Source: Azolla caroliniana
Taxonomy: Eukaryota; Plantae; Polypodiophyta
Direction: 5' to 3'
Assembly (NCBI GenBank): GCA_043228905.1
Contig: JBHGNT010000003.1
Coordinates: 24,862,001-24,926,000 of the forward strand
DNA: 64,000 bases
Part shown: positions 6,301-64,000 of the stretch, piece by piece
Numbering within the stretch: position 1 is the first letter of the stretch
Layout: each line of letters begins with the position of its first letter
The notes under the pieces: model-generated
Database searches by the model: none
Told to the model about the DNA's origin: nothing
The model's input: only the letters and a program-made list of their open reading frames with translations
Position numbers and translations under genes: made by a program

Positions 6301-9300
6301 TAGGAGCTGTTTGGATTCGAATAATTCCATCATCATGACCTGAAATTATGTACTGATGAGACTCTGAGTACCTGCAGCACCAATACACAATGACATCCTA
6401 TAACCATACTCTTTTCTCAATTCCAAAAAATATTTCTTAAAATCCAACTAAGAAAGTAAAAGAATATTGTAAACAATAGATCTGAGATGTACAAAATAAC
6501 ATTCACCAGAGGGATTATTCAGGACATTAAACGAGTTAATGCAGATGCTGAGAGCTCCACTACCACAGTAGAATTTCCAGAATGGATGCCAATTAGTGTC
6601 CTTATTAGATATAAAAAACAATGGGAAGTAGACCCAGACAGATGTAACAACGATGCAGCTTCTAAAATCTGGATCTTGGAGGATACATGCCTGAAGAACA
6701 TGACGTGGGATCCAGCAGAACTAGGATGGACAACTCCAAAAGGTAATATTCAGTTTTTCCGTTATTCGTCTAAGCTTGGCCACAGTATTCTACAGCGCAA
6801 GAACTTGGAGCAAGAGGGCCTTTCTAGAAAGTGGATCAAGGAAGACTTGGATTATGATTTCCTAAATCAATACTGGAAACAATTATGGGCCACTAAGATT
6901 GCTGAAAAGATAAAAACTTTCTTATGGCTATGTTGCCACAGATCTCTTCCAGTAGGCGCTTGGCTGCAGAAAAGTGGAATTGATGGGAACTGCAGGTTGT
7001 GCTCTTCAGGACTCGAATCTCTAGAGCATTGCTTATAGGAATGCTCTCATGCACAGGAAGTTTGGTTGAAAAGTGATGAGAATACTAATGAAGAGCAGGC
7101 TGGAAGGTTGTACGGTTTGGTTCGGTTTGAGAGTGTCAAAACCGAACCAATTTGAAACCGAATCATTTAAAATTTTTGAAACTTGAACCGAACCAAACTG
7201 AACCACGAAACCATTTGAACCAAATTTTTAAAAAATCCAAACCGTTAAAACCGCAGTTTCGTGGTTCAGTTCAGTTTTCAACTTTGTCAAAATTCAAATT
7301 TTAAAAAATTTCATTATTTTAAATTTTAAATTTTCAAAATATTAAATATTTTCCTAAAATGTGATAATTTAATTTTTAAAAATTAAACTTTAAAAACCAT
7401 TAAACCGTTTAAACAGCGGTTTCGAACTGTTGAAACTGAACCAAAATCGAACTGTTAAAAAAAACTTGAACCTGAACCAAACTGTTTAAACCATCAAGCT
7501 GTTAAGCATGGTTGCCTACTGTTACTGGAAAGCTCCATAACTTTGGGATTTGCAATATGGTGGAGATTGGAGAAGAAAGCTTGGATATCAGGAGACCTAG
7601 GTGGGCTGAAGGCATTTCGTGTGCAAAGAAATAAATGCACTGTAGAACCATCAAGGAATAATTTGGTGTTCGAATAGGCTGAGTGACATCTGGCCCACCA
7701 TAGCCTCTATCATGCTATGGAACATTTGGAAATCTAGATGCAAAGTAGGTCTCACAGGAGAAGAAAGTTGACCAAAAGAGACAATCACTGCTCTATGGTA
7801 TGATCTGATTACGAATATACGAGCTCAATATGAAGAGTTGGAAGGAACTTCAGACACAGTGGAAGCTGCGAGACTTTCCTTTCAACAATCATGGTTAGAT
7901 TCGCCCTTGGTGGATTATGTAGATGGCTTGCCAAAGTGGTGTTACACCACGTCAAAATGGTTATTTCCACCTTGGCAGCCCAACCAGGAAGGTACATGGT
8001 ATTTTTCTGAAATTTTACATACTGCAAGATGATAAACACATACTGGGGTAGTGTGGTTGAATGTCTATCATGACATTTCTGGTGTACATATTGGTGTAAA
8101 GACACTCTACCTAACTAATGGGAAGTATCTTTTTTTTTTGTAACTACTCTAGGTTATGTAACTGACGTAGATTCAATCAAATAAGTTTACTGCACATAAA
8201 GATTGACTATTTGTTGCCATATCTCTTTTTGTGCAGTTAAATCTCGTTTTATAGTTCCTTTAGGGAGGATAGTCTATTCTATTATAAACTCTTCAAATAT
8301 CATGCAGTAAAGAACCTCACAGGCTGATATAAGTGTACATATTTTTAAAAGAATAACATATTAATCTTCAATTTATATAGATTATAACTCACCTAAGACA
8401 TCTTATAGGCGTAGAATGCCACCTTGCAACACCCATTACCTCCTTCATATCAATGTGGCATTCAAATATATATCCTGCTGCATTGCCCTGCATCACAAGT
8501 TCTATGAGTTTCTCGTTATTATGTGTAGAATCTATATAATGCTCCACTAATGACATGTACACGTTACCTCCAAGGCTATGTAAAATGTGTTGAGGACACT
8601 ATTTGTGTAAAGCAGTGCACAGACTGCTAAAACAGAGTTTTTATCCTGTTGGGCATTCTGCCCACCTGAAGGCAGAGCTTCTACAGAATCAGATTGCTTT
8701 GTAGAGTAGACAGCATCTTTACTGGCAGTAGGATCCTTGGTTGATCCTATTGACGTTTCTTTCTGGTTTTCTTCACAAACATCTCTAGACTGGATGTCTG
8801 TTTTCAGCTCTTCTTTACTTTTGTTAATCTCTTCTGTTTGTACAGTTTCACTAATGTCACTTTTTGGTTTATTGGTTTCCTCCTGGATTGGAGAATTTTG
8901 CACTGCCATTTCTTGATCAGCTTTCAAAGATTTGTCTTCCTATGGCCGAACATTCTCATCATTAAAACCAAGTGAAAATATGTTTATTTACTTCTACAAA
9001 GATAAAAGTGGAGAACGATTATCTCTACATGAGATTCTGTATTGCTTGACACATTTTGAGGAATCTCTGGCAAAATAAATGTGTATAACTTTGAAGGAAG
9101 ATTCAGCTCGAAAGTGAATTTTGTGTCTGTATCATATCCTATACCACCAAATTCATTGTTTTGTCAGGATGTCTATGTACTCACAAAGCACAAAAACTTT
9201 ATAACGCATAACATCAATTAGAAAACATACAAAATTAGCTATGAGAAACTCTTTAATATTCTTGCCATTTCATTAGTACCAGGGCGTGGGACTTCAAGAA

Positions 9301-12300: not shown

Positions 12301-15300
12301 TCATCTCCATCATCAGCTGCATCCAGCCACTTTATACACTCTTGTATTATGAGTAATTGTGTTAATTTAAAGATTATTTTATTAAAATGTATGTATAGAA
12401 GCATGGAATGGTGGGAAGAATGAAAGAAAGAAAGATATATTAGCATCTTTTAAGAGAAGATACTTGGTCTATGAAGTAAGTTGCAACCACAGATTGCTAG
12501 GCACACATGCATTGTCAAGAAAAATCCAGGTTTAACTTATGAAATTATAATGCATGATCTTGCTAGTCTGCACCCAAAGGTTACGGTGTTATTTGGCATT
12601 AAGTCTACATTTTTTGACATGTTTTTTCTCAGTGTCCCCTTTCTTTGTACTGCTAAAGTCAGTTTGATAAAATCTTAGTAAAAAATGATAGTATTTAGTA
12701 GAAAACAATATCACAAATTTGTATAATAAATCATCCGTCAGATGATTTGGCATCTAAACCTATGCTCAATATACAAGCTAACATGCAACCGATATTTTTC
12801 CAACCATTCAGCCCTCTCGTTCATTTATGTGCCTCATCTCATCCGATCGATGATCGTATTAACTGGACAGTCAGTCACTTCTGCTGCTGTTGAAATGAGC
12901 TCTTATGTGGTTTATGCTGATGAGCTGCAGATTTAAGCATCCAATTCTCAAACCAAAACATAATATTTATGTACTTCAAGTGTTTCCCTCTTCGTTTTCG
13001 GATTCTTATCAAATGCTCTCATACTACCCAGATTAGGCTAATGCTGGAGCAAGACAGGCCCAGACTACAGAAGAAATGAACCTCTCTATATAAATTGTCA
13101 TTTCTTTGCCCCACACCAATATAAGCCAAATCTGCTTTGGAAGATCTAGACAATTGTTCAGCAACATATGAAGAGAAGGTAGTTTAGTTTTTTTTTTCAT
13201 AAAAATATCCTCCATTGGTATTAAAATTAAAGTGGCCAGGGGCAATATACAAATAGTATATAAACTATGTCATCTCAACAATTATAGATCATCCAAGAAA
13301 GGACCAAAGATAAGTGATGTCATTTGGCAAGATACCTTCTTGCCTCATTCAATCAAAGAATTTTATTACCTCGTCATGAACACCATATTCTACATAGCCT
13401 TGCTGAGAGTGCAGCCTTGTTGCACCAATAAAACTGCACAACCCAGGTATGCTCTGGTCACACTTATTCCTCTCTAGCTCATTGGAGTGCTTCTGATACC
13501 ACCGTTTTTTTATGTGAGATAGGAAGATTTCTATTTGATTTATCCATTACATAGAAGAACTTTGATGACCTTTCCCGTTGAGGGCCAAAATCACTATCTC
13601 AGAGAGAAACTTGCCCACAAACAAACCATTTTTTTGAAAACGAACTTATGCATCTCTGGCTCTCTTTTGTGTGTGTGTGTGTGTTTTGCTTCTAGAATCT
13701 GCATACATCCATGGCTGTGTATTTCTCTTTTCCTCCAAAATTTCCATTCCTCACAATTTTTTGAAAACAATTACTTATGCATCTCTGGCTCTCTTTTGTG
13801 TGTGTGTGTGTTTTGCTGCTAGAATATGCATGCATCCATGGCTGTGTATTTCTCTTTTCCTCCAAAATTTCCATTCCTCACCTCTATCATCAATTAGTAC
13901 CTTTATATTATTCACTTTCCTTTAACCTTGCAAAATGCATATAGTCCTGTCCCAGTGAAACCAAGAAGCGGACCTAAAACATTTAACCAGTCAAAAAGAT
14001 AAACCTCCAAATCATACCCACCCTAATACCACAGTAAACAAGTCCTTCAGATTCCCACAAATTGTTTTGAGTCAAGGGAGAGTTAAGTGTTGTCTTCAAA
14101 AAGAATGCCAAAATGCATGAAGCCAACACAACAAGTTGAAACCCTGTTTCAGACACTCGAAGAAAATTCATGGTTCTCTCTAAATCTTCATTTAAAATTG
14201 CCCATAGTGCCAATATGGGTCCACAGATCATAACATTACACCACATAAGACCAAACTGTTGAGCCCACTTGTTTTACCAAAATGAGAGATGATTGAGAGA
14301 TATATAGCAGTTGTCAAATTTGATAGCAGAACCACCATGTAACCGTGCAAAGTGAAAGACAGATCTCGTGAACCAGCTACAAATGCACCCAACACTATAA
14401 TTTCGACACTAGCAATAACATATCTCTTATTGATGCCATGCCAATTATATTCATAGCATCCACTAGCAATAAACCTATCATTCTCATATCCTGCCAGTAA
14501 GATCTGGATATGTATCTTTTGTCCAATAATAATTGACTTCAAATTGCCACAAGCTCTCACTTCAGCTTGCATTTTGTCAAAATAGTTTAATGCCTCTACT
14601 GAAGGTCCATGTTCCACGTATCCTGAAATTAGGGCAGTCCATGAAACAACAGTATAACTACATAATGTAGTGAAAACATGTTGTGACTCAAACATGTAGC
14701 ATACAAATCCACCAAACTGTTACCAACAAAATGGTCATCCTCAAATCCCTTACATACAATATCTGTATGAATTTCCCATCCTTCATTGAGAGCTTGTATG
14801 CTACCTAATTGCTCCAACGCTACCAGATGCTTTCAATATACAAGCAAGAGTAACTACATTCAGCATAGTGAAGAGAAGGTAGTTAATTTCACTTCATTCA
14901 ATTTAGTAACTTATGGAGTTTAGTCTCTACATTAGATCATGTATAGAAAGTATCAGGAAAATTGCTTTGTATATGGAAAAGAATGAAGGTAGATTTTAAA
15001 AAATTACATGCTATTTATACCAGTTTGTTCAACTTGGAAACCAATACCTCTGCTAAAATTATTTACTCAACCAATTGACATTTTGATAATTTGAATTAGA
15101 CTGGAATTGGTGGAATAAATGATAGTGAATCTACCTCAAGACTCCAAAATCTGACACAACCATCTATTCCAGCAGTGAGCATCTCGTTCACCTTTTCATC
15201 CAACTGAATAAATTCAATCATGCCCTCATGGCATGGTTGGCCCCCAGGTCTTTTAAGCTGGCATTTTATTAACCCATCATCCCAAACAAGAACTGTCCCT

Positions 15301-32779: not shown

Positions 32780-34178
32780 TTTTTTTTTTCCAAAAAAAAA
32801 CTCCTTCCATTAGTTATAAAATTTTAGAAATGGGATCATTATGTACAAATCCCTCTAGGGACATGATAGTTCCATCTTATGTGGATGCCCACTGACTCAA
32901 GAAAGGGAGAGGATGACCATTGTTGGATGAAGGCTATTCGTTGTCTTTCAACTCCATCAGAGCCGCCATTGAGGCCATCATATTGGCTCTTTAGAGTGGT
33001 TACAATTTCACTCCATATCTCTTGCAGTAACATTGTTGGATGCACGGTTTGGTTGGAGAAGACCCGTCTACACCGTTATTTCCATAGAATCCAGAGTGTT
33101 ATTGGGTTGACCAATTCCAATACAACTTGAGATTTGTCATTAAGAGGAGTTGAGTGGACATTGCTGTTGGCGGAGAAAAAAACCTCTTGTGCTTTTATCA
33201 CCAAAGTCCTCCCCTCCTCCTGATGCTCGTATCTGCCAACTAGGGTTTGCCAAGATAGCCAACATATATTACCCCACTTGATTGAGCCTTGCACCTGGCA
33301 TAATTGCAACAAGCAGCCAACCCCTAACCATATTCGATAGGACGCTAGGCAGTCCCATAGAGCATGTCGTATTGATTCTATTGTATTTGGGCACTCTACA
33401 CAATTAGGAGAGCTAAGGTTCCCATGTTGCCATGCTCCCATAGGTAGTGACTTATGTATTAATAGCCATTGGAATGTGGTAATTCGCCTCGCGTGTTGTT
33501 GTTTCCAGATTTTTTGCCAAAACTTGGTGATAATTGTGTGAGGAACTTGATATGTGTGCCAAACCTTTGCAGCAGCCGGCTCTCGGGCAGTTTGAGCAGC
33601 TAGGATGCGGTGACCCAATCTAGTTGTGAATTGGAAAAAAGGGATGGGTTTGCTTCCTTGCCCCGTCCCGTGTAAGGATCACGCCATGTCCATTGCAAAG
33701 GATCCCAACTGACATTACGGAGCCATGTGTTTTCATGAGTACATGAGTCAATCGGGTTGTACTTTGATCAGATCAGGGTCTACAATCCATTTATGACCAG
33801 TATATGCAAGTACTCAAATTGCGTTATTCTGTGTGGGCTCAGTGTCTCGCAATTCAGAGCCTTTGATCCTGTTTGGTGTTCCCCTACCTCTCGTGATCAA
33901 AGATCCCTCCTCCTCGTAGCCTATCCATTTCTCCATTGTCGGCCTTTGAGTAGCAACTTCCCTAATCAATAGTGTTAATGATTTTCGATCTCATAGTCCA
34001 TCCGCCCATGATTCCATGGAGTATGTTGGCTTGATCTTGTAGTGGCAATGACATAAACCGTCTCCAACATTCTATACTTTTTCCTGGGCCTTCTGCAATG
34101 TATCCCCATGACAACCCCTTACATGATCCAAGTAGTTGATTAGATTAATCCTTGATACATGGGTTCCATAGGATACGT
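32780..34178 (-). mobile_element. 5'-truncated L1-like LINE (zf-RVT region) with poly(A) and a 20-bp target-site duplication
   Basis: ORF 33076-33618 has FWQKIWK..FQWLLIHKSLP..CVECPNTIESIRHALWDC..ITLWILWK. Poly(T) at about 32778-32789. Perfect direct repeat TGAGGGAATTGACCTTAGTT at 32760-32779 and 34179-34198. Confidence 0.9.
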
Positions 34179-39980: not shown

Positions 39981-42900
39981 ATGGCTATAGTAGACTCTTC
40001 TTCTTCTTCTTCTTCATCATCATCATCAACATCATCATCATCATCAACATCTTCTAGGATTTTTGATTCCTCTTCCTCTCCTTCCGATATAGGAGACTCC
40101 CCTCCAACAAAGCACACGGAGGATCAAAGCCCCCATCTGGGGAAAAATCCCAATTCAGACCACAACTCGAAATCGGAAGATGATGAGATTCAGAAGAAGC
40201 CCAATTATGAGGATGGATCGAGTCCGGATCATGGGTTTGAAACCGAGATTCCCAATGGTTTTGTGACTGGGAATCTGTCCGAGAGTGTTCCAAATAGCGA
40301 TTTTGTGTCCGAGACTCAGAATTATGGGTCTGGGACTTCTTCTACTGGGTCATTGTCTTCAGAAGGTGGACACGAGAATGAAAATGAGACCACGGAGAAG
40401 GAGACTGAGAATGGGTTTCATAATCATAGTCATCATCACCACCACCACCACCATCATGCACCCACTATGCAAGAGCTCGTAGATTTCTTCTCGAAGCTCA
40501 ACCCACATGCGAAAGAGTTCATCCCACCCTTGTCTCATGCCAATTCGGAAGAGATTTCACCCGAGAATGCCAACAAAGCTAACAACAATCGCAAGGTTAG
40601 CTATGATTCCAAACAGTTGTTTTCTTTGTATATACATCATTAAAATCCTATTTCTTTTGATTGTATATCTATTGTGTTTTAACATCCATCTTATATAGCA
40701 TTATACACATATTTGGATTTGACGTATACACTATTTAATTGTCACTGAACTAACACAAGAGAAGCCAGATAAAGCTCTGTAACCTCATAAAGAACATGCC
40801 GACTGTGGTTATTGTAATTTACTAGATCAAATGTTGGTGCATCTGCATTATGTTTTGCCACCCATAATATTGCATAGAAGTATACACATTATTGAATTGA
40901 GGAAACATATTGTTTGATTCTCACCAAAAAACCCGCAAGGAAATCTAATAAATTTAAGCAACCAGATGATAAAGAACATATCAGTGTGGTTTCTATAAAT
41001 GTGCATCCATGAAAATGAATCCTGATTATCCGTTGGTCTCATCCCACACATAAGTGAACTTGAGGATTAGATTCTTGCCAAAAAGGAAATTGAGGAATAG
41101 TACAATGCTATTATTGGCATAATGTGAAAACGAGGGGTAACATGATTCAATTATAGCCGGAAAACCACAAGGGAAATCTGGTAAAGTTTGGCAGTATATA
41201 ACATATCATTGTGGTTTGCATACCTATGCACCAATATAATTTCTCTTTCATTATTCTTTAACAGCTGCTTTTGATGGTTGTATGCACATGACCCAATATT
41301 GTGTAATAACATGATTCTATTGTAAAGTGAAGTTTTTAAAAACAATATGTAATCCATCGCATTACATATGGGCATCTGAATAAGAGGAACACATTCTTAA
41401 CTTAAACCAGTCTGGCTTCTTTAACAATGCCCTGGTGGAAATATTATCTATATCAGTTATTTGGTTGTAAATAACTATGAGTTTGGAATTTGAATAAACT
41501 TGCCTATGTAAATTAATCATTGCATCAGATATGGACTTCATAGTGATCAGTCAATCCATGTGTAATTTATGGGCTTCCTAATGAAATATAAGGAGGTATT
41601 GCAAGTCTATGCATTTTTGTGAGGTTAACTAAGAAACCCTTCAATCTTACTCAATGTTGGGATTGTATTTTAAGTTTTGTGAGACATAGAATTTCAATTT
41701 AAACCACCATGTGCAACTCATTTATCCTCTATGAGTTTCTTAATGAGAGGTGAAGTACTATTGCAAGTGGACAATTTTCATGAGTTTCACAAGGCACTTC
41801 ATTAATATTATCATTTGTTTTTGTATACTGTGATCATATTTAGCTTCATAATTTCGTCACAAATCTAAACTCAATTTGAACTGGTAAATGTTCTACTATT
41901 TACACTAATATCACATATTTGGTTTTATTAATGTGAGTGTCATGACTGATATATGTATAGAAGAAAAATGGGTATGGTACCAAAAAGCGCAGTGCCAATA
42001 GCAGATTGCATAGAGCCCAATGGGACGATAGCATTCGCCGGACAGTTTATGTCTCTGACATCGACCACCAGGTGCGGACAACGTCCTAAACTTGTCAGAT
42101 TCTCATATTAGCTCTTCTCTTTGCAACATTCATACATTAGAATTGAAAATTTCAAATGTTTGATATATGCATAGAAAGTCAACATTATGATAACATTATG
42201 AAGGTGCAATCCTCAAAATTTGCATACTTCTTGATAGAAGAACTGACTTTCACTTTTAACTCAAAATGAATGGCAGGTCACGGAAGAGCAGCTTGCAGCT
42301 CTCTTTCTTTCATGTGGACAAGTAAATCCTGTCAATAGCATGCTATGTTATGATATCAATTCACCTGATTGGATGTTTCATAGCTGATTTATTCAGTGAA
42401 TTCTTTGACAGGTTGTGGATTGCCGTGTGTGTGGAGATCCGAATTCTGTTCTTCGTTTTGCGTTTGTAGAGTTCACTGATGAAGGTGAGCAATAATATCT
42501 GATGTGATAATATATGGAACGCGTTGCACATTTAGAAACATTTACTTTACCTCTTATATGTACTGCTAAATATGATTACCTTCTCTTTTCCGCTCATGGA
42601 ACTTTTTATAAGTTGGTACTCCCTTTAGAATTAGGCCACATGGAAATTCTGAGGGATTAAGCACAGTTTTTATTAATAAGACCTGTTAAAATAGAAGAAG
42701 AAAAGAAACATTCACATTATACATTTGGTGCTTTTGCTTTTCCAAAGACGGAGCTCGCAGGGCACTTAGTCTTGCTGGAACAATGCTGGGCTTTTATCCT
42801 GTGAGAGTTTTACCCTCTAAGACTGCCATAATACCAGTAAATCCTACATTTTTACCTCAGGTATATTTTGAACTTCTAAAGGCACTAGGGACTTACACAA

Positions 42901-53420: not shown

Positions 53421-56050
53421 CAATGATATTGTTTTTAACCTAAAATCTAGTTTTGACGTTTTTAGGTTTGTTAACATTTCTTTTGAGAAAACTATAGTAT
53501 TCTCCAAACTAAAATTATGATAAAATTACAATGGATTCTCATTTGTCAAGTGGAGCCCCAACTTTATGGTGTTGAAAGAGGTGAACCAACAAGACTTTAC
53601 AATTGTGAGAACTTTTGATTGAGAATGCACTAGTTCTGTTTAAAGACTTCAAAATCTAGTCTCCTCCTATATGGATTAATAAAAAAATTTATTTTTAAAA
53701 AATATATAAAAGAATGAATAAACATGTCCATTCATCGCCTTTGAAGTTAATCATTGGTGCATAGACTAATTTGAAGTTCAAGAGTGCATTTAATGAGATT
53801 ATGCCAACAAAGTTACACTATCAAACCTATAAATAGCAGTATAAGATAATGTGTGTTAATATCAACTTTTCTAAATTGTTGCAATCCATGACATGAGACG
53901 TGAAATATGAATACAATTTCTGATGTATTATTTGGTCCACCCTCTTCATATTAAAGCCATACATTCCATGGTAAGTTGTTAAAAATAAACATCAAACTTA
54001 AACCCAATTGTAGTTTTCCATGCTATGAAAAGTTGTTTAACGTTCATTCACAACATAAGTATTAGGTATAACAAATATAATCTTATTGATGGTGTTAAAA
54101 TACATATTGCTAAATATCTTTTGCATATGAAAATATCACAATTGCAACATTAAGGATCACCACATGAGTTAATATGCTATTACTATGTAGATAGTATTTA
54201 AATTATGTTACCCACAAAGAGAATGTGTAATTGATGTACTTAGCGATACCAACTTCTTTTTGAATAAAATCTTGATAATTGATCTTTAATATGTCGGCAT
54301 GATGCTGCCTTGTAATGTAAAATAGATGACAATGATGGTCTTTTAATGTGATTTAGAAATATCAAAATGCAAAGCTAAAGACAAACACTAGTTCTATCAC
54401 TTCTCATTAAAAGGAATTTGGCCATCATGCATAACCTAGTGAACATTGTTTACCCGAATGCTTCTAGTGGAGGCTCCAAAGTGTGAATATAATAACATGA
54501 TTCCAAATCAGACAAAAGTAAATGGAACACTTTTCTTAGATGGTTTAAGAACAAATCGTTTGTAGATTTACCCCCCCACCATTCATTCCATAAAGGAAAT
54601 ATGACAAATGTGTGAACAACAACAAAACTTATTTGTCACCTCGCTTTTAAAGTTGCAATATGTAGGACCACAATACATGGTGGGTTTTACATCTCACATA
54701 TTTCTTTGATAAAAGATAATTCCTTTGATTTTTTATATGTAGATATGAACCTTCTAGAGTATATTATGTTGACAAGTTGACACAAACAAATTAGATGCTT
54801 ATAGAAATTAAAGAGACCCGTAGTTTTTTGGAAGGCTCAATGATTTGTGACAACAAAAAGCGTAACATCACTTGTTACCAAGGTTCTTTTACTTGAGTTT
54901 CTCATGCAAGCTCAGGACCAATCCCCTCTACATAGATTGACTAAACACAACAACCTAATACAACATTCGAGAGCGTCTGACAACCTCGACTAGTATAAAG
55001 CTCGGTAATCAAACAACCTTTGAGAGCTTCTGACAACTAACCTTAAATAATATACAAAATGAAGTTTCTACACTACTTCTAGATCTAGGTAAATGACATA
55101 GTTGAGAAGTAAATCAGTTTGATGGATGATCACCAACATATTCTCGACTTGAAGTGAATGTCGCATGCATTCTATCTAAGTAGGTTCATAACGACAAAAA
55201 CATGCAATGGTATGTTTTAAACCAAAGTTGGACAATTGAAGTAAATGCATACAAAATACAAGAATCTTAGCTTGAATATGCATGGATGGCATCAAGTTGG
55301 TCATTAAGACTAGAAAATGCAGAAAAGAGTAGCACATTGGGTGCACCATGCAATATAATCCAAAAGTTGGTAAAGTTGTGAGCAGAGTTACAAATTTCAT
55401 GAAAACGGTCCCAGTAACTGGAGCAACAATGACACTAACACGTAACATTACTGGTTGAAAGCTTCCCCTATCGAATGTGGACAGCTCACCACATGAGAAG
55501 GTAAAAAGAAAAAGTTAGTCGAAGTTTTCAAACTCCTAGGTTTTGTTGTGAGTATCATGAGAGAGGGGTCCAAAGGATGGACGAAAAAACGAGGATCATA
55601 ATCATGTGGGATGAAGACAAGGATGCACTGTAAATTGCTTTTCTTATGTTAGGAGAAGGAAATAAATTATAGAAAAGAAAAGGACAAAAAAGGAGTATGG
55701 ATTAAATAAAGGAATGGAGCAGAAATGTGAGTCAAAAGCAAAAAAGGCAAAACGCAAAAGCAACCTCTTCTTCTCATGGAAGGAGAAGGAATTGCCAAAA
55801 AGGAAGATGTTCGGTACAGAATCAATAGCAGCATATAGACAAGTAGAAAGTTAAATGCAACAGAAGAACAAGACTAAGTAAGAGCAATAAGAGGATATCT
55901 CTTTCATCATGACTCCATTGTTGGGATTTGTGATCTTTATTGATGCAATGCAATGCAGTGTTGTGATTGAACCCAAGATTCTTAGCCTGTGATTTTTATG
56001 AGGTCTCTCCTCCTCCTTCATATATACTTTGTTATCAATTTCTTATACCC

Positions 56051-56104
56051 GTATGTATGTTTGTATGTATGTATGTATGTATGTATGTATGTATGTATGT
56101 ATGT
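56051..56104. repeat. (GTAT)n microsatellite
   Basis: About 13 units with one interruption. Confidence 0.9.
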
Positions 56105-56948
56105 AGTTTTTATTGGAAATGGTAGACAATTGTTTTGTTTTGTATTGTTAGTTTCTTATTTAGTTAAGATAGATTACTAATGTTATAATTATTTGAAATT
56201 TTGGGAATAGAAGATGTATGATCATAGGAATAGGTGTATATATTGTATGACATAGGAATAGTAACAGTAGTTGGGAAATGCTAATGATTTGTTTTACTAA
56301 GTATATCTTTGTCATTAACAGAAATAGAACTTCATTCCATCTACCTCTCAAGGCGCTTTACCAAAATGAAGGTAAAACCTCTTTTTTTTTTGTGAAAACT
56401 CCAATTATATTAATCATATTGACACATGGAAATACATGTTGGTGATTAGAGTGTGACAATATCAAACCCATGTGTCCCTCACTTCAACATGAGGTGTATC
56501 TTAACGTGAGCTTCATTGGGCATTCCTAATCTTCAGTATCAATGTGGCTCTTTGCGACCTTCCTTTTTATTGTGTATCAATTTGGCTAAATAGTATATTT
56601 AAGAAACTGAAAATTGGATGAATGTTAGGTTCTCTAGTTTTTCATGCATGGGTAGACTACACACAAATCCCTTTTTTCCTCCTATTTATACATCCAAATG
56701 GTCTTAAACATTGCATTTCTAGAACTAGTTCTTGATTACTTGGAGCTCTTGAAGTGTATGAAAGAATTTTGCTATTGTTGTTTTTCTGTCTTAAATATTG
56801 CATCAAATTTCCTTTTGGTATGTACTTCTAACCTACATGAAAACCATAGAACTCTATTGGTCTTCCTCTAGACTCTAGGATCATTGCATAATATGTGATT
56901 AACACTTCGTTGAACTCGCTCACACAAGTTAGATGTTGAGATAGCATC

Positions 56949-59900
56949 ATGGCATCATCACCAAGCTTGAGGATATGCAAGGTATACAATGAAACCTGGA
57001 GGAGGACGAATATCATTTGCTTCTCATATCCGCAGCATATAAGTTAATTCAGAAAAAGTATGATCACTTCTTGTACGGTCATAAAAATCAAAATGTCATA
57101 CTCAAATCTCCACCAAGAAAGGATGAATGCTAACGAGCATGCATTATTTTCAAATATCAAGAAGGCTATTTTATGACAATTTACCAAGGTTATTTCTATT
57201 GCCAAAATCTTATCGAAGTGTCATACTCAAATCTCCATCAAAAAATGGTGCGCACTTAAGACCATGCATTATTTTCACATATATGATACTTTACCAAGGT
57301 TAATTTTATTACCTGAAACTTTTCTTTATACAGCCAGCCATTCAATAGGACATTCATCTCAACCTTTGCTTTTGAAACATTAAATGGTCATAACGTGCTT
57401 TCTACATTTGCTCATTTAGTTCTTGAAACAATTGGGAAGAAGAAGAGGACAATGAAAACCACAGGATTGCCTCAACAAAGAATAAATGAAATAATGAAGA
57501 TCTCTCATGAAAGAGAGTTGTTAGTCCCATTTTGGTTCAAACAAGTTGCTAGTATTCCCAAACGGTTGCTTTCTATTCCTGGATAGCTTGATAAAGCAAA
57601 CATGGTAGCATTGAAAGTTCATTGGTAGAATATCCTCTACAAGTTCAATAATACATTATCAAGTATTCGTTCTACATCACAACTATTTGAGATTACAATC
57701 TGAGGTATAATTTGATATTCCATTATGCATACCTCATGAATGTGTTCATATAGTAAATATAAGGGTCACATTCTACATTATCTACATCAAGAATTCCCCA
57801 TTTCCCAGGAAGATACTCAAAACTTCAACATGGGATGCGTCGTCGCATTACCTTATACAAAACAAAACAAAAATTAAATTTTATAAAAGACTGTTATGGC
57901 CTATCACACATGGTAAAAAAATCACAATTATTTATGTTAGCTCATCAATGCAACTAACAACAGAAAAAATAGCATCTTAAAACTGAATGGCTTCAACAAT
58001 AATCATGAATAACCAACTATCAAGGATGATCACTATGAAGTGTCCCAAACTATGACCAATCATTGCATAGTATCAATCAATCCTAGAAAAGGCACTAGTT
58101 GCTCTCCTACCATGTCCATGTATGTTGAATACAAACTCCATGGCTTTCCTCCTTGCCAATCTTTAACATGTCCAGAAAAGTTAGTTATCCAAACATCAAT
58201 TAAGCCCAACACTAAAGTTGCCTCACCAAAGACCGAAGGTGCTTCCTTTACTCTATCATAACCCTAAACCCTATGAGAAGGGTGGTGAGATCATAGCCCA
58301 CAAGGCTAGGATGTAAACCCTTTGCAGTGTCTTGGTTGAGACCCTTTTGTGTGGCGTTAATTGATTTATATCAGAAGTGATGGGGCCAAATAGAGTAGTG
58401 ATTGCTCTTTCTTGATGAGCTCATATAGTGATATTGTATCATAGAGGGCCTGCTATGATGCCTTTCATTTAACATTCTACGCCCTTTTACTCTATCGTCC
58501 TAGGAACAACCCGTGCACATGTGCTTCAAATCTAGTTGAATATGAGATGTCTTCTTCCTCACAAGGAATTGGAAGAAAGCTATTTCTTACCTGTGTACAA
58601 ATTCTCCACTTTCCTTATCATACCAACAATTTGTGAGGCTCTATGAATCAAGGACATTCCCAATAAAGCATGTCATTCTATACTTCAAAACAATACACAT
58701 CAACTGTCTTGAGTAAATGGGTTCTTAGACAATACTTAACATTCATATCATTTTGACACCTATTTTCACATTGAGGCCTAGATATGCATGATCTACAGCC
58801 AATAAATTCTACTAGAGACAGAAACTTCTCATGTCAGGTAGAATATATGGAGGAGATCCAATAAACTAATAAACTGCTTGCACATGCCTTCCAACATGTC
58901 TAAGTATCTCATCTTGTCCATGGTGAAAAACCATATGTATTCGTCATGCAAGCAAATATTATGATATCATCTTATAATGGTGAAAATTCTGATTCTCCAT
59001 GAGGTGTAAACCTCAATTAGGTAGGTGCAAAGTAGAAAATGAGGTGTTAACCTTAACTCTCTGAGATCGCCTCTCTAACTTCATATCCATATATAAAAAG
59101 GCCTTCAGTTTTGTATTGGGACTTGTGAAATGCTAAGCCATTCAGCTGATTAGATCACTTGAACGCATTTAAGTGATGTGTCTCATCCAGAGTTTATTGC
59201 CAGAGAGAGAGAGAGATCTTTTTAACGTCCATGGGAAACCGATTGTGACCTTTAGGCAGCCTAACCCATGGCAAGGATCGAACTTCAGAGAGAGAGGGAA
59301 GGATTTGAATTGTCTTTGTAGATCCAAAACCTGTAGTTCGATGTTAGGACTTGTTATGCAATGCAGAGTCAGATTGACAATTAGATCACTTCAACCCATT
59401 TATTCGTTCAAGTCTAATCAATTTTCTCCCTCTACAGTTTGACAAGTAGCTAATTTTATTCTCAGGGATATTCCTCAGTGAAAAAGATGTTAGAAAAGTA
59501 CCATGTCACAGTACACAATGTATTTGCGGCATATGGATCATTTGTAGCAGCTCATCCCCTACCACCGTTCTTGTATGTGGATTACATATAAATTCATTTC
59601 TTCTCTAACTTGTCAAACTCTTGATTTACAATGGGTATTCCCTGCATTAAATATGACTATCAGGATTGGAATACTCCTATTAGGATCCTTATGTATTGGG
59701 CTCTTGAGAGCAAAGGAGGAATCCAACATCGAAAACCTATGGGTTGATCAAAATTCTAGGATTGTACCTGAAAAACATGACTATGATTCCTAGTAAGTAA
59801 TATCTCTAAGTAGACAATTTTTCTTTTTTTATTAGAGTGAAGTTTCGCTCCTTATTTCAAAACGTCAGCATATAATATACTGTTTTTTTACATTGTCAAT

Positions 59901-62900
59901 GACACAGTTTTGGAGGTATTTCTCGCAAGCAATCAGTAGCTATCACTATGAAGGATTTTCCAGATAAGAATTTGAACAATCTTGGACAGGCCATGGATGT
60001 GTTGACATCATCTATAAAACCCCTTTATGATGAACTTACTTGGAACTTTTCAGAACCAGACCAAATTCAGGTTGAGCTTCGCCAGGTATATTCTTTGGAC
60101 ATCATTCCCCATCAGAAACATCTATCATAATACAAGTATGGAAGCTAAATATAGTTTAATACATCAAAATGTCTTTAAATCTCGCACAAATCCAATATCT
60201 ACTCTTTTTTTATTTACTTCATTATCAGTACATACCAATGTATGATGCCTCTTACATTTGTTATACCAATAATCCAAGATGATCCATCTTTCCATAAAAG
60301 TGATTAGCTTTGCTCTTTGTAAAAGAGCTCCCAAAGTTCAAGTATAATATTCTTCATTGTCAGCCATAACTACTGGTATCTGTAAGAAAAGGCAAGACAT
60401 GAAATAAATAGGCCCCAAGGAGCAAGAAAGTCACAATTATGTGCTCCTTTCGCATGTTATAGATATAACAAATCCAAGTATCTGATGTGTTCTCTACATA
60501 AACTGTGTAAGTTCAAATACAATCATATGTTGTGAACATTTCAGAAATAGCTTTGAATGCAAGGTGATTACCTGGTCATTCAGTGTGAGATACTCCTCTG
60601 CAAGAATACCTACAACATGTTTTGAAAAGATTAGAATGCAGACCAAAATAACATATAGAAGGATTGAAAACAAACTTCTATATACAATCAAGTGACATAT
60701 TTTAAATAAGTTTTCAATCTATTATGTCAAGTGACTTATATTTTTTTATCTGCAGCATGATTTCTGCGAACGTCCTTTCATCCCAAAAACTCTAAGAACT
60801 GGAACTGATCCAAACGTATACGGAAATTGGTATGTGTGGGGATATCGGTCCATATCAAGATGTTGTTTGGATACAGTTGGATTATTTATTGGCACAAATC
60901 TCAGCAAATATTATCTTCCTGACAACTGGGGATTTGACATTCTTCCCTGCTACAAGCTTTCTCCAATGGACTGCTTCCAAGAAGGAAAGGCTTTTGACTA
61001 TCCCCAGGCCTTACAACAGCTTGAACAGCTAGGTGTTTTGCAGATCCCCTAAAATAAGCATAATTTAAGTTGAGGATGTCTTCACAAGAACACATGACCT
61101 TTTTCTTATTTTTGTGGATGGAAGCTAACTGTAAACTAACAAACTTTACAAAACCGTCTATGAAAGTGACTTCAATTTTACTGTACAATACACCCTCACT
61201 TTATGTTGTTTTTTTATGTTTCCTATAGAAACAAAAGCTAAATGAATCCAAGTAGCTTTACAATAAAGTTTTTCCTTTAGAGGACAGTCTTTCATGGTAA
61301 ACATGGACACATGTCATGTAGATGAGAGTGTGTTTTAGCCTCCACATTAAGATTTCAAAGTTCTGAACTTCTTTGCAGTTATAATAAATGCCACCCTGAA
61401 TGCAACTTTGAATCAACTAGTAGTGGGAGTTGAGAAGCTTACAAACAATTTATGCTTCAATCAGTTGCAAACTAAACTGAAGAGCAACCCCAAAAGTATC
61501 GGTGTGACAGCCACATTGTCACAAGAAGAGATTGAAAGTGTAAGAACTTACAGTATAAAGGTTAGATATGTGGTTTGATCATTGCTATTAATTGCTGACA
61601 TTGAAAGTTCCAACACTTTACAGATATTGACAGGTATTAAGACAGTTATAATATTTTTTGCCTCTTGGGGTTACAATTGGAGACCCTCATATAAGAACAT
61701 GAGCAATGAAGAGGTCAGTCCAAGCTTTCAAAACATAATAGGCTTGAGCTGAGGCTTAATCATGATTTCTTATTTATTTTTCGAATTATGTAGATTCTTA
61801 ACTATTTCAATAAGGCCATAGACTTCTCAAAGAACACAAGTATCACCAATCCAGCTGTAAGAAATCATTTTTTTCTGAAGTAAAGAATGTGTCGTTTTTT
61901 AATTAAGTGACAAACTGTAAGTGCAGGTTAAATTACCATCCCTTCACATCCAAATTCTTCAAATATTCAGAAACTTAACAAACATTTATAGATAGAGAGA
62001 TGGGTGGAGTTCAGGCATTCATGCTAGTTCAAGAGAAATCAACACATGAACAAAATCCACTTGTTATTATTCATATGATTACCATTATTACAGGTACAAT
62101 ACTGCATAACTGAACACAGACCCTGTTGTTTGACATGGTTTGGAGCAACTTCACCAGTCGAAGCTTCTTTTGGTAGTGTGAATTATGATCAATCCGGGGA
62201 AATATCCAAGGTAACTAAAAGACATGTACTTTTGTCATTTGCTTTGTCTAGTTTTTCTAAGCAGACTTGATCATAATAATTAGATTGGATCCTTGAGGTG
62301 GGGAGCCAACAACTGGAACCAGAACCACCCCTTGTGGGTAGAGTATATTGCAACAAGGCTCAACACCAGTTTCAATGATGAGCAAAGGAAGAGCTTGGTC
62401 CTTTCCTGGGAAAACCTCATGGTTAAAAATCTTTCCCCATTGCATGCCAACAGAGATGGTACAAACTTTAGCGCAGGAGCTATCTTTGAAGATTATCAGG
62501 TCCAGTTCACAATATGGGTATGTATTAGGATCAGTTAAAGGTAACAATTGCATGTAATGAATTGATCTGAAATAAATGTTTCTTAGGAGGTGCTGCCTAT
62601 TCAAGAATATTTATTCTCATTGACTATCTAGTTCACTATAACTGCTGAGTCATTACAGTGCCGTGAGTTCAGATAACTTTTGAGAGGGATGAACTATGGA
62701 CCTTGCAACAGTAAACAACCTTCAACATTCTGATAATCAATTAGAATTGGCCCTGTACATACATCTCAGTACATATTACAGTTTCCAATATACTGAGTAA
62801 CAAAAAATGGTATATGTAGAAAGAATATCAAAACTCCTAGCCTAAGTACATTATTGAATTAGTTTTATGTACAATGAACATTATCCAATATCAGTTTAAG

Positions 62901-63950
62901 AAAACATTGACATGTAGAGACAATATCAAAACTCCTTTTCCATGACTAAACGGAAGTAACAGAATAAAAAGATTTAACTTCGCATTTAAATGCCACGAAA
63001 CAGGAATCAACATACCCCATTCAGAAGCATCTTCATTCATAATTATGTTGGGTGATATGTAGCAGTACAAAATGTAATACAGACAACAAAATTGTTTTAG
63101 GTATCCTTTTCTTATCTTGTACGGATTATAAACTGAATATATAACCTGAATGTGAATATATATGCTAAAATAACACAGATCCAAAATGTCTTTTTAAACC
63201 AAATTTCAGTCAGTTCAAGGAAAGTTCCAAAAAACATGGAGTGAGATCTTATTGTTCAGAAATTCCAGGGTAATAAGAAAGCATTTCAGCATGTGTATTA
63301 TTAGATCAATTTTGATCCTGAAATTTTTGTTTTACGGATACACGAGCATGATTGCCATCTCCCAAGGTTTTTATACCTTCCACATCATACCAAATATGTG
63401 CATATATATTATGATCACAATTATTTGTGGCTTCAGGTTATCGATACTGTGTAAGACAGAGAGATAGAAATAAGAGTAAACGTGATATTAATGTCATCAA
63501 AGGGCCAAAACGCCCTATGAGACCAAAAGTTACATCCATTTGAAACTAACGGAGAGAGTGCATGTGGGTGTCGGTGTGCTTGCATGTACACAGAGGTCGA
63601 TAGAGGATGTACTACAAGATGCAAATAATGTTCCCATTTGGCAAATTATTTTGAGTGCTGGATTGGTATTTATTTACTCAGTCGCATGCTTCATCAACAT
63701 TCGTCATCGCATTCACTCACATGCATGGCTTGCCCTCATGGTAATAGAATATTTTCAATAACCCACTCTTGAAATTCTTATGAACTTCATTAGCTGAATT
63801 ACATAAAAATAAAATTTTGGAATTTTGATTATTAGGGAATTATTGTAGTCTTGTTCGCAATAATTGCGGGTTTCGGTCTAGTATCAGCTCTCGGCATAAA
63901 GCTCTCTCCTTTATCAGGATCAGTTGTACCATTCCTTGCTCTTGGTCTTG
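56949..63950 (+). CDS. Patched-like (PTCH-type) sterol-sensing-domain RND-family membrane protein, 5' half; continues beyond the window
   Basis: Exons 56949-56981 (candidate first exon), 59466-59572, 59664-59792, 59908-60085, 60756-61032, 61379-61539, 61624-61713, 61794-61856, 62094-62210, 62284-62517, 63594-63740, 63836-63950. All GT-AG, continuous frame, about 550 codons. TM1 and flank: YGSFVAAHP..FLIGILLLGSLCIGLLRAKEESNIENLWVD. ECD1: [70 protein letters not shown]. Confidence 0.9.
57093..57313. repeat. Imperfect tandem duplication in the putative first intron of the Patched-like gene
   Basis: TGTCATACTCAAATCTCCA..CATGCATTATTTTCA..TTTACCAAGGTTA at about 57093 and 57219. Confidence 0.7.
57400..59000 (-). 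mobile_element. Degraded LINE relics (L1-like endonuclease remnant and RTE-like 3' region) in the Patched-like gene intron
   Basis: The reverse strand at about 58020-58140 gives FSRID and SDHP (endonuclease motifs). 58275-58425 is homologous to the RTE 3' UTR at 9795-9970. Confidence 0.5.
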
Positions 63951-64000
63951 GTAAGTACTAAGCAGCTGCACTTAAAGCTTTTTAAACTTTGTTCTTATCA

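Follow-up and report, generated by a model that had tools for sequence, protein, structure and literature searches.

What is a Patched-like gene in a fern, and how does it relate to the Patched proteins of animals? The question is raised by a stretch of 64,000 nucleotides of Azolla caroliniana DNA (contig JBHGNT010000003.1, positions 24,862,001 to 24,926,000), referred to here as the window, in which the front (5') half of such a gene is located on the + strand and runs off the window end. Animal Patched, a member of the RND superfamily, acts as the receptor for Hedgehog and transports cholesterol, and the "patched family" of flowering plants is usually equated with NPC1. Plants are not known to possess Hedgehog or Smoothened. 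An earlier note on this DNA had described an intact, intron-containing gene of PTCH type with 12 GT-AG exons, retained in a seed-free plant and possibly acting in flagellated sperm.

The 12-exon model was reproduced as described, with GT-AG introns and no stop codons. Exons 2-12 (11 of the 12; 59466-63950, + strand) proved exact, but exon 1 had been wrongly placed at 56949-56981. In a transcript contig of run X1, position 59466 is joined to an upstream exon ending in ...CCAAAATGAAG, which was found at 56340-56371; the loose end of this contig before 59464 matches there exactly, and nowhere else in the window. The true first exon ends at 56371, and the corrected protein start (MKGYSS...) falls in line with the N-terminal residues of every orthologue. 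The segment at 56949-56981, with the translation MASSPSLRICK, is not used: it lies in a repeat within intron 1, with a depth of 85 in run X5 and many partial contigs, and no contig joins it to 59466. The corrected model still has 12 coding exons, with 541 stop-free codons within the window, and consists of the following features.

56340-56371, + strand: true first coding exon, minimum extent, with 5' UTR, ATG at 56366, AAG ("MK") and GT donor at 56372 (X1 contig)
56372-59465, + strand: intron 1, 3,094 nt, GT..AG, both ends checked; repeat at about 56900-57100
59466-59572, + strand: exon 2, brief cytosolic N-terminus, then the beginning of TM1 (tblastn; X1 and X2 contigs with the joint 59572/59664)
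59664-59792, + strand: exon 3, remainder of TM1 (IGILLLGSLCIGLL) and start of outer domain 1, NLWVDQNSR (joints in X1-X3; alignment)
59908-60085, + strand: exon 4, outer domain 1 (joints 59792/59908 and 60085/60756)
60756-61032, + strand: exon 5, outer domain 1, with conserved Cys and the motif common with PTCH (joints; alignment)
61379-61539, + strand: exon 6, outer domain 1, with two N-x-T sites (joints)
61624-61713, + strand: exon 7, outer domain 1, WGYNWRPSY (joints)
61794-61856, + strand: exon 8, outer domain 1 (joints 61713/61794 and 61856/62094)
62094-62210, + strand: exon 9, outer domain 1, with conserved C-x6-CC (joints)
62284-62517, + strand: exon 10, in which outer domain 1 ends (joint 62210/62284; past 62517 the loose contig end runs into exon 11)
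63594-63740, + strand: exon 11, TM2 and start of the sterol-sensing domain (loose-end sequence reads 63594 onward; tblastn; alignment)
63836-63950, + strand: exon 12, TM3 and start of TM4, GT donor at 63951 (Pfam PF12349; alignment)

Eight of the introns between exons 2 and 12 correspond to joints in spliced contigs of the public runs X1-X3. The ninth is indicated by a loose contig end beyond 62517 that carries the opening 30 bases of exon 11 (from 63594), while the last intron (63740/63836) is based on its GT-AG ends and on tblastn with the Ceratopteris orthologue as query. The same search against the window recovered the same exon blocks, and no second copy of the gene. Other features of the window are a PPR-repeat ORF and LINE-like ORFs.

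Spliced contigs from run X1 and from the relatives X2 and X3 lie over the gene with 0-1 mismatches, and transcript contigs reach at least about 300 nt beyond the window end. The fern Patched-like gene is real and expressed, and the earlier description of it as intact and intron-containing holds within the window. All eight outer-domain cysteines conserved in the family are kept. Among the exonic differences from close relatives, the nine with the best support comprise five synonymous changes and four conservative replacements. Spliced transcripts, an intact frame and conserved cysteines together argue against decay.

The window encodes the N-terminal half of the protein: a cytosolic N-terminus of ~30 aa, TM1, outer domain 1, which is Cys-rich, with disulfides, and probably glycosylated, and TM2 up to the beginning of TM4. 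A length of about 1,120 aa and 12 TM helices are expected for the complete protein. For the Ceratopteris orthologue, an AF2 model (pLDDT 85) and full-length Foldseek matches to PTCH1 and NPC1 show 12 TM helices arranged as two 1+5 repeats, with one large outer domain per repeat. In exon-by-exon searches of Pfam and PDB, exon 12 alone gave a match, to the Sterol-sensing domain PF12349 (E = 7.3e-6, 26.4 bits, cutoff 22.3), and the other searches were blank. Eight full-length relatives were scanned against Pfam, comprising one land plant (Riccia) and seven other eukaryotes; PF12349 (1e-36 to 3e-14) and PF02460 were found in all eight, and NPC1_N (PF16414) in none. Precomputed Pfam assignments of plant orthologues likewise contain PF12349 and PF02460 and lack NPC1_N, while the plant NPC1 matches have it. 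The transcript-defined start lies ~30 aa ahead of TM1 and is shared by complete Pteridium transcript ORFs, which bears out the earlier claim that an NPC1 N-terminal domain is absent. A charged relay, G-I-D-D in TM4 and S-E-F-T in TM10, is kept in every plant orthologue displayed in the alignment; it is known from these orthologues, as in the window gene the TM4 Asp-Asp and TM10 Glu fall past the window end.

The earlier note had also matched a series of motifs to human PTCH1. One of them, the PC-x5-P-x-DCF-x-EG block of outer domain 1, aligns with "IPCLIISPLDCFWDG" of coral PTCH (P0077) and is absent from the NPC1, PTCHD3-like and NCR1-like rows of the alignment. A profile of the outer domain alone finds PTCH1 solely through this 16-residue block (E about 0.02), and therefore the other motif matches lack statistical support. 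Taken by itself, the outer domain bears hardly any resemblance, by profile, to proteins of solved structure.

The local model shows 62-67% identity to full-length fern proteins over ~540 aa in one collinear alignment, and 41-44% to bryophyte and lycophyte proteins. Full-length orthologues occur in liverworts, mosses, lycophytes and ferns, and every bryophyte, lycophyte and fern genome that returned matches has one. The gene is single-copy in M. paleacea and Riccia, while in ferns there are two paralogue clades, into one of which the window gene falls. A clade member is also annotated in the conifer Cryptomeria japonica, as an 860-aa model without TM1 and most of outer domain 1, which weakens the view that the gene is restricted to seed-free plants. 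In flowering plants, the database matches were NPC1 only, with no Patched-like member.

Unrooted trees, with the joined 541-aa model as one of the rows, were inferred under LG+G4 (47 and 25 rows) and LG+C20 (21 rows). Their references included one PTCH (coral) and one PTCHD3-like protein (Artemia, P0082), and the sampling lay outside Dispatched, PTCHD1/2/4, nematode PTR and any bacterial outgroup. Under LG+G4, the land plants were recovered with support of 100/100, as was a Patched-like group which encloses them together with a red alga (Bangiopsis), a stramenopile (Chrysoparadoxa) and a choanoflagellate. The split of PTCH plus the Patched-like group from NPC1, PTCHD3-like and NCR1-like proteins received 100/99; the corresponding LG+C20 values for land plants, Patched-like group and PTCH split were 100, 99 and 97. 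The PTCHD3-like reference, a single sequence on a long branch, lay on the NPC1 side. Judging by these trees, the land-plant family, comprising liverworts, mosses, lycophytes, ferns and at least one conifer, nests in a eukaryote-wide Patched-like group; its stem is long, at 0.74-0.98 substitutions per site, and its identity to the protist members is 25-28%.

The AU test rejected a grouping of land plants with NPC1 (p = 8.3e-5), in agreement with the earlier view that the protein is not of NPC1 type; membership of the window gene in the RND/Patched superfamily, other than as an NPC1 orthologue, is supported. Placing the Patched-like group with NPC1 instead of PTCH was not rejected (p = 0.12), with one PTCH reference only. 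In PDB sequence searches, the Riccia orthologue ranked PTCH1 (1.7e-50) ahead of NPC1 (9e-42) and NPC1L1 (3e-30), and gave no match to Dispatched at E <= 1e-3. A comparison of predicted structures, proposed in the earlier note, pointed the same way: the top 15 Foldseek matches of the Ceratopteris model were all PTCH1 (E = 1e-39, TMq 0.62-0.68), followed by NPC1L1/NPC1 (from 4e-33; TMq 0.60-0.66) and then Dispatched (TMq 0.43-0.48). Among characterised proteins, animal PTCH stands nearest on all three measures: tree, sequence score and fold. Direct orthology to PTCH was not shown by the sequences, and the plant proteins belong to the separate Patched-like group. A feature search of the ESM Atlas returned generic Patched, PTCHD and Dispatched clusters only.

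We consider it roughly 80% probable that the locus is the 5' half of an expressed fern nuclear gene for a Patched-like RND sterol-sensing transporter, with PTCH1 as its nearest characterised relative and a putative role in lipid transport. What has been demonstrated is the structure of the gene, its expression and its place in the family, together with the fold and the relay residues of its orthologues; substrate, membrane, direction and physiological role we infer as follows. Transport would be driven by a cation gradient, as in PTCH1 and NPC1, with the Asp-Asp of TM4 and the Glu of TM10 as the relay. The cargo may be a sterol or related isoprenoid lipid, which would be moved between a membrane leaflet and the outer domains. 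Such movement could regulate membrane sterol locally, with no canonical Hedgehog/Smoothened pathway involved.

It is scarcely credible that the gene is instead an NPC1 orthologue with missed N-terminal exons, a relic that is decaying or no longer expressed, or contamination from a source other than a plant. The Patched and SSD domains of Pfam are indeed common to NPC1, and most of the exon-by-exon searches were blank, but the AU test is against an NPC1 grouping, the transcript start coincides with the start of every orthologue, and distinct NPC1 proteins with NPC1_N exist in plants. Decay is countered by the transcripts, frame and cysteines described above, while a foreign contig, which the earlier note had named as a risk, is countered by fern proteins as the nearest relatives and by the PPR-repeat and LINE-like ORFs of the window. 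The proposed role as a regulator of membrane sterol in the sperm flagellum, kept only where sperm swim, is unlikely. It draws on the action of animal PTCH1 at cilia, on the presence of the gene in all matching bryophyte, lycophyte and fern genomes, set beside NPC1 only in flowering plants, and on the abundance of Patched-like genes in flagellated Ectocarpus gametes (PMC3879662). The link to cilia is weakened because one clade member is from Cryptomeria and the red alga Bangiopsis belongs to the wider group, neither lineage being flagellate: the sperm of conifers is non-motile, and red algae are not known to bear flagella at any stage. Moreover, the supplements of a plant-spermatozoid gene screen contain no "patched" entry.

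Descent of a true PTCH orthologue from the last eukaryotic common ancestor, serving in seed-free plants as receptor or antagonist of sterol-modified Hog/Hint ligands, is distinctly unlikely. In its favour, both full-length trees give PTCH as the sister of the Patched-like group, and PTCH is the best PDB and fold match and has the outer-domain motif in common with the plant proteins; signal-peptide Hog-domain proteins have been reported in Physcomitrella and Selaginella (PMC2362128), and Ectocarpus gametes express nine Patched-like ("Ptc-like") genes together with a Hint-domain gene (PMC3879662). Against this, the Riccia orthologue, which here stands in for the window gene, reaches 175 bits versus PTCH1, compared to 974 for a true cnidarian (coral) PTCH, and the plant proteins are without the long cytoplasmic tail of PTCH. 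A constraint that unites plants with PTCH to the exclusion of the protist members was disfavoured but not rejected (AU test, p = 0.07), and rooting by the internal repeat (TM2-6/TM8-12), in which only the N-half was resolved, parts the plants from PTCH, which it places with NPC1/PTCHD3. A wider proposal, that an ancient Patched-like transporter and secreted Hog/Hint proteins form a sterol-linked module of cell-cell or gamete signalling in non-flowering land plants, a counterpart of the nematode pre-Hedgehog system that was lost toward flowering plants, must be regarded as speculative and quite improbable. A Patched-like sterol-sensing transporter is the reading that we retain.

Literature searches brought up no study of a Patched-like gene in land plants, and at least one comparative-genomics study treats Patched as confined to the animal lineage (PMC3495828). 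The novelty is nevertheless lower than had been thought because public databases already contain over 15 orthologues from plants, one of which, from Selaginella, is named "protein patched homolog 2"; the window gene is an ordinary member of this available, though unstudied, family. Its significance lies in a separate Patched-like lineage that is conserved and expressed across liverworts, mosses, lycophytes and ferns, probably also in some gymnosperms, and that was not encountered in flowering plants. Marchantia and Physcomitrium offer a tractable and often single-copy gene with which the role of a Patched-type sterol transporter without Hedgehog or Smoothened can be addressed, and the family could reveal why flowering plants manage without it.

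Among known systems, PTCHD/Ptr and Dispatched are similarly RND/SSD proteins without NPC1_N, PTCHD being of similar size. Dispatched differs in lacking a PDB sequence match at the threshold given above and in its TMq of ~0.46, the sampling of both families being too thin for a firm verdict. NPC1, NPC1L1 and NCR1 share with the plant family the RND/SSD fold and "LW..FD..FG..R" at the start of the first outer domain, but the plant proteins are without NPC1_N and have D-D in TM4 rather than D-N, and NPC1 is without the DCF-EG motif. Animal PTCH1/PTCH2 and Drosophila Ptc, like the plant family, have 12 TM helices, two outer domains and a sterol-sensing domain, and no NPC1_N; the G-x-D-D of TM4 and Glu relay of TM10 (in plant orthologues), PC..P.DCF.EG in outer domain 1, the best PDB sequence and fold match and the sister position in unrooted full-length trees add to the likeness. 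In contrast to animal Patched, identity over the fold alignment is only about 20%, the plant proteins (~1,120 aa) have neither the long cytoplasmic middle loop nor the C-terminal tail and end ~30-40 aa after TM12, an insert of 45-50 aa precedes the DCF motif, the His after E-F-T in TM10 is missing, and beyond the motif block the outer domain cannot be aligned by profile. The Patched-like protein of Phytophthora sojae (PsPTL/SCP3) has 1,046 aa, and its knock-out is reported to have no growth or stress-response phenotype (PMC8530017). The kinship of the plant family with such non-animal Patched-like (PTL) proteins was placed through those of the red alga, Chrysoparadoxa and the choanoflagellate, the published oomycete and brown-alga sequences lying outside the trees. 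The PTL proteins have the same make-up as the plant family, with SSD and Patched domains and no NPC1_N, and are of similar length.

The 12-exon, stop-free gene model proposed in the earlier note was reproduced by six-frame translation and splice-site checks, with all introns bounded by GT-AG on the + strand. The gene is transcribed, as spliced contigs were present in the public sequencing runs X1, X2 and X3 (the last two from close relatives), and the X1 contig pieces differ from the window by 0-1 mismatches each. Eight introns were recovered as direct contig joints in these runs, and the last intron is listed after them:

59572/59664, + strand, intron joint (spliced contigs X1 and X2)
59792/59908, + strand, intron joint (X1-X3)
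60085/60756, + strand, intron joint (spliced contigs)
61032/61379, + strand, intron joint (spliced contigs)
61539/61624, + strand, intron joint (spliced contigs)
61713/61794, + strand, intron joint (spliced contigs)
61856/62094, + strand, intron joint (spliced contigs)
62210/62284, + strand, intron joint (spliced contigs)
63740/63836, + strand, last intron (GT-AG ends and tblastn; outside the 6,000-base stretch compared with run contigs)

The contig overhang past 62517 is identical to the start (30 bases) of the 63594 exon. A tblastn search with the Ceratopteris orthologue returned the exon blocks of this model and no further copy of the gene in the window.

The first exon had to be replaced. 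Upstream of 59466 the X1 contig reads '...CCAAAATGAAG', a sequence that occurs once in the window (56340-56371) and is directly followed by GT, whereas the exon 1 first assigned to 56949-56981 is unused. The latter lies within a repeat inside intron 1, at an X5 run depth of 85. The corrected start, 'MK/GYSSVKK...', aligns with residue 1 of all orthologues. This gives 12 coding exons with 541 codons in the window, which the gene leaves at 63950. The repeat itself (~56900-57100) is dispersed, with a summed X5 contig depth of 85 and many partial contigs, and includes the ATG...GT stretch previously read as an exon. A (GTAT)n microsatellite of ~60 bp (56046-56105) precedes the first exon, as far as that exon is known, by ~240 bp.

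All eight outer-domain cysteines conserved in the family are retained, the gene model contains nine N-x-S/T sites, and among the nine exonic differences from close relatives with the best support, five are synonymous.

The joined 541-codon model was assembled from window coordinates and compared locally with fetched proteins, while single exons or full-length orthologues served as queries in the database, family and fold steps. Most searches call for queries longer than a single exon, and exon 12 alone exceeded the Pfam threshold (Sterol-sensing, 26.4 bits). The 92-aa exon 5 retrieved 26 relatives from 1.84 billion representative proteins. Fifteen of these are proteins of 1,050-1,230 aa matched at residues ~95-290, which leaves no space for the NPC1 N-terminal domain, in agreement with the earlier note. 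The top full-length match, a Riccia fluitans 'SSD domain-containing protein', was used as proxy query in word-based orthologue searches. Full-length orthologues were identified in (i) liverworts – Riccia, Marchantia paleacea and Calypogeia, (ii) mosses – Ceratodon and Physcomitrium (two copies each) and Sphagnum, (iii) lycophytes – Selaginella (RefSeq 'protein patched homolog 2') and Diphasiastrum, and (iv) ferns – Ceratopteris (two copies), Adiantum (three neighbouring genes) and Pteridium (two transcripts). A conifer, Cryptomeria japonica, has an 860-aa model. In flowering plants these searches returned no orthologues, all matches being NPC1 with NPC1_N.

The window model shares 62-67% identity with one fern paralogue clade (a single collinear alignment of ~540 aa), 50-54% with the other, and 41-44% with bryophytes and lycophytes. 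The Adiantum capillus-veneris genes (P0064, P0069 and P0074; GOP47_0011419, _0011420 and _0011425) sit on one contig with near-consecutive locus tags and span both fern clades, which may thus stem from an old tandem duplication. A second X1 contig matches only part of exons 2-3 (59511-59753) before continuing into unlike sequence. It reads like the transcript of a paralogue, in agreement with the two fern clades, and suggests that both are expressed.

Against solved structures, the Riccia orthologue matched PTCH1 best (1.7e-50), followed by NPC1 (9e-42), NPC1L1 and yeast NCR1, with no match to Dispatched. However, it scored only 175 bits against PTCH1, compared to 974 for a coral PTCH (P0077, Montipora foliosa), and hence is no close orthologue of PTCH. 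P0077 (1,897 aa) has two PTCH1-matching blocks separated by a long insert with SSD-like matches, and its gene model looks fused or duplicated.

In maximum-likelihood trees (LG+G4 with bootstraps; LG+C20 PMSF), land plants formed a single clade (100/100) and ferns grouped with Cryptomeria (95/96). Within fern clade A, Ceratopteris 01G097400 and Adiantum 11425 accompany the window gene. The plant clade lies inside a Patched-like group of other eukaryotes (100/100), including the red alga Bangiopsis, the stramenopile Chrysoparadoxa and a choanoflagellate. This group had coral PTCH as its sister, apart from NPC1, one PTCHD3-like and one apicomplexan-type NCR1-like protein (100/99 with LG+G4, 97 with LG+C20). 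A clade of plants plus NPC1 was rejected (p-AU = 8e-5), in line with the proposed distinction from NPC1 orthologues. The AU test did not reject the Patched-like group with NPC1 instead of PTCH (p = 0.12), or plants with PTCH to the exclusion of the protists (p = 0.07). When the internal TM2-6/TM8-12 duplication was used for rooting, the N-half grouped PTCH with NPC1/PTCHD3 and had its root within the Patched-like proteins; the C-half resolved nothing. The trees and structure search support PTCH as the nearest characterised relative of the plant proteins but do not establish orthology to it.

For the Ceratopteris orthologue, the AlphaFold model (pLDDT 85, pTM 0.79) resembled PTCH1 most closely, with PTCH1 as all of its best 15 Foldseek matches (E = 1e-39, TMq 0.62-0.68, 20-21% identity), followed by NPC1L1/NPC1 (from 4e-33, TMq 0.60-0.66), with Dispatched and HpnN far lower. 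Among the PTCH1 motifs given in the earlier note, PC..P.DCF.EG is aligned in coral PTCH and the protist group and absent from the NPC1, PTCHD3-like and NCR1-like rows. The profile of outer domain 1 by itself (the large extracellular loop between TM1 and TM2) reached PTCH1 through the 16 residues of this motif only (E about 0.02), so the note's other motif matches carry no statistical weight. The same profile reached the NPC1 middle domain through its 'LW..FD..FG' start only (E about 1e-3).

A link between the gene and flagellated sperm had also been put forward. It agrees with the presence of the gene in all bryophyte, lycophyte and fern genomes with search matches, and with the NPC1-only matches in flowering plants. 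Nine Patched-like genes are, moreover, expressed in Ectocarpus gametes (PMC3879662). However, a published screen for spermatozoid-linked plant genes has no 'patched' entry in the supplements searched. The link is further countered by the clade member of Cryptomeria, albeit with an N-terminally truncated annotation, since conifer sperm are non-motile, and by the red alga in the wider group, as red algae are not known to have flagella.

Four other ORFs with domain matches were found in the window:

6487-7035, + strand, zf-RVT (zinc-binding reverse-transcriptase) ORF, E = 8e-11
14231-14695, - strand, PPR-repeat ORF, E = 5e-7
33079-33618, - strand, zf-RVT ORF, E = 1e-7
39981-40640, + strand, ORF of 220 aa carrying the PABP-interacting motif PAM2, E = 9e-6

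The two zf-RVT ORFs are LINE-like retroelement remnants. The PPR ORF is probably part of a pentatricopeptide-repeat gene, consistent with a plant nuclear genome, and the PAM2 ORF may represent one exon of a different gene.

No study of a Patched-like gene from land plants came up in full-text literature searches, and a comparative paper describes Patched as restricted to animals (PMC3495828). Patched-like genes have been described in a brown alga (PMC3879662) and in oomycetes (PMC8530017), and Hog-domain proteins in moss and Selaginella (PMC2362128). The plant orthologues already carry automated labels ('patched homolog 2', 'patched 1/2 protein', 'SSD domain-containing protein'), so the clade is not new to databases, though no dedicated paper was found. 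The window gene is genuine and expressed, and belongs as an ordinary member to a plant family that databases already contain but that is unstudied. It does not represent a new kind of system; the point of interest is the phyletic pattern of this family.

The G-I-D-D of TM4 and the Glu of TM10 (S-E-F-T) are kept in all plant orthologues, in which this conservation was read, the corresponding residues of the window copy lying past the window end. TM4 Asp-Asp and TM10 Glu form the cation-relay triad required for PTCH1 activity. In the plant proteins, a cation gradient would power the transfer of a sterol, or of a lipid similar to it, between membrane and outer domains, and such movement would be their most likely function by analogy with PTCH1. 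NPC1, in contrast, has D-N in TM4, where the plant orthologues have D-D.
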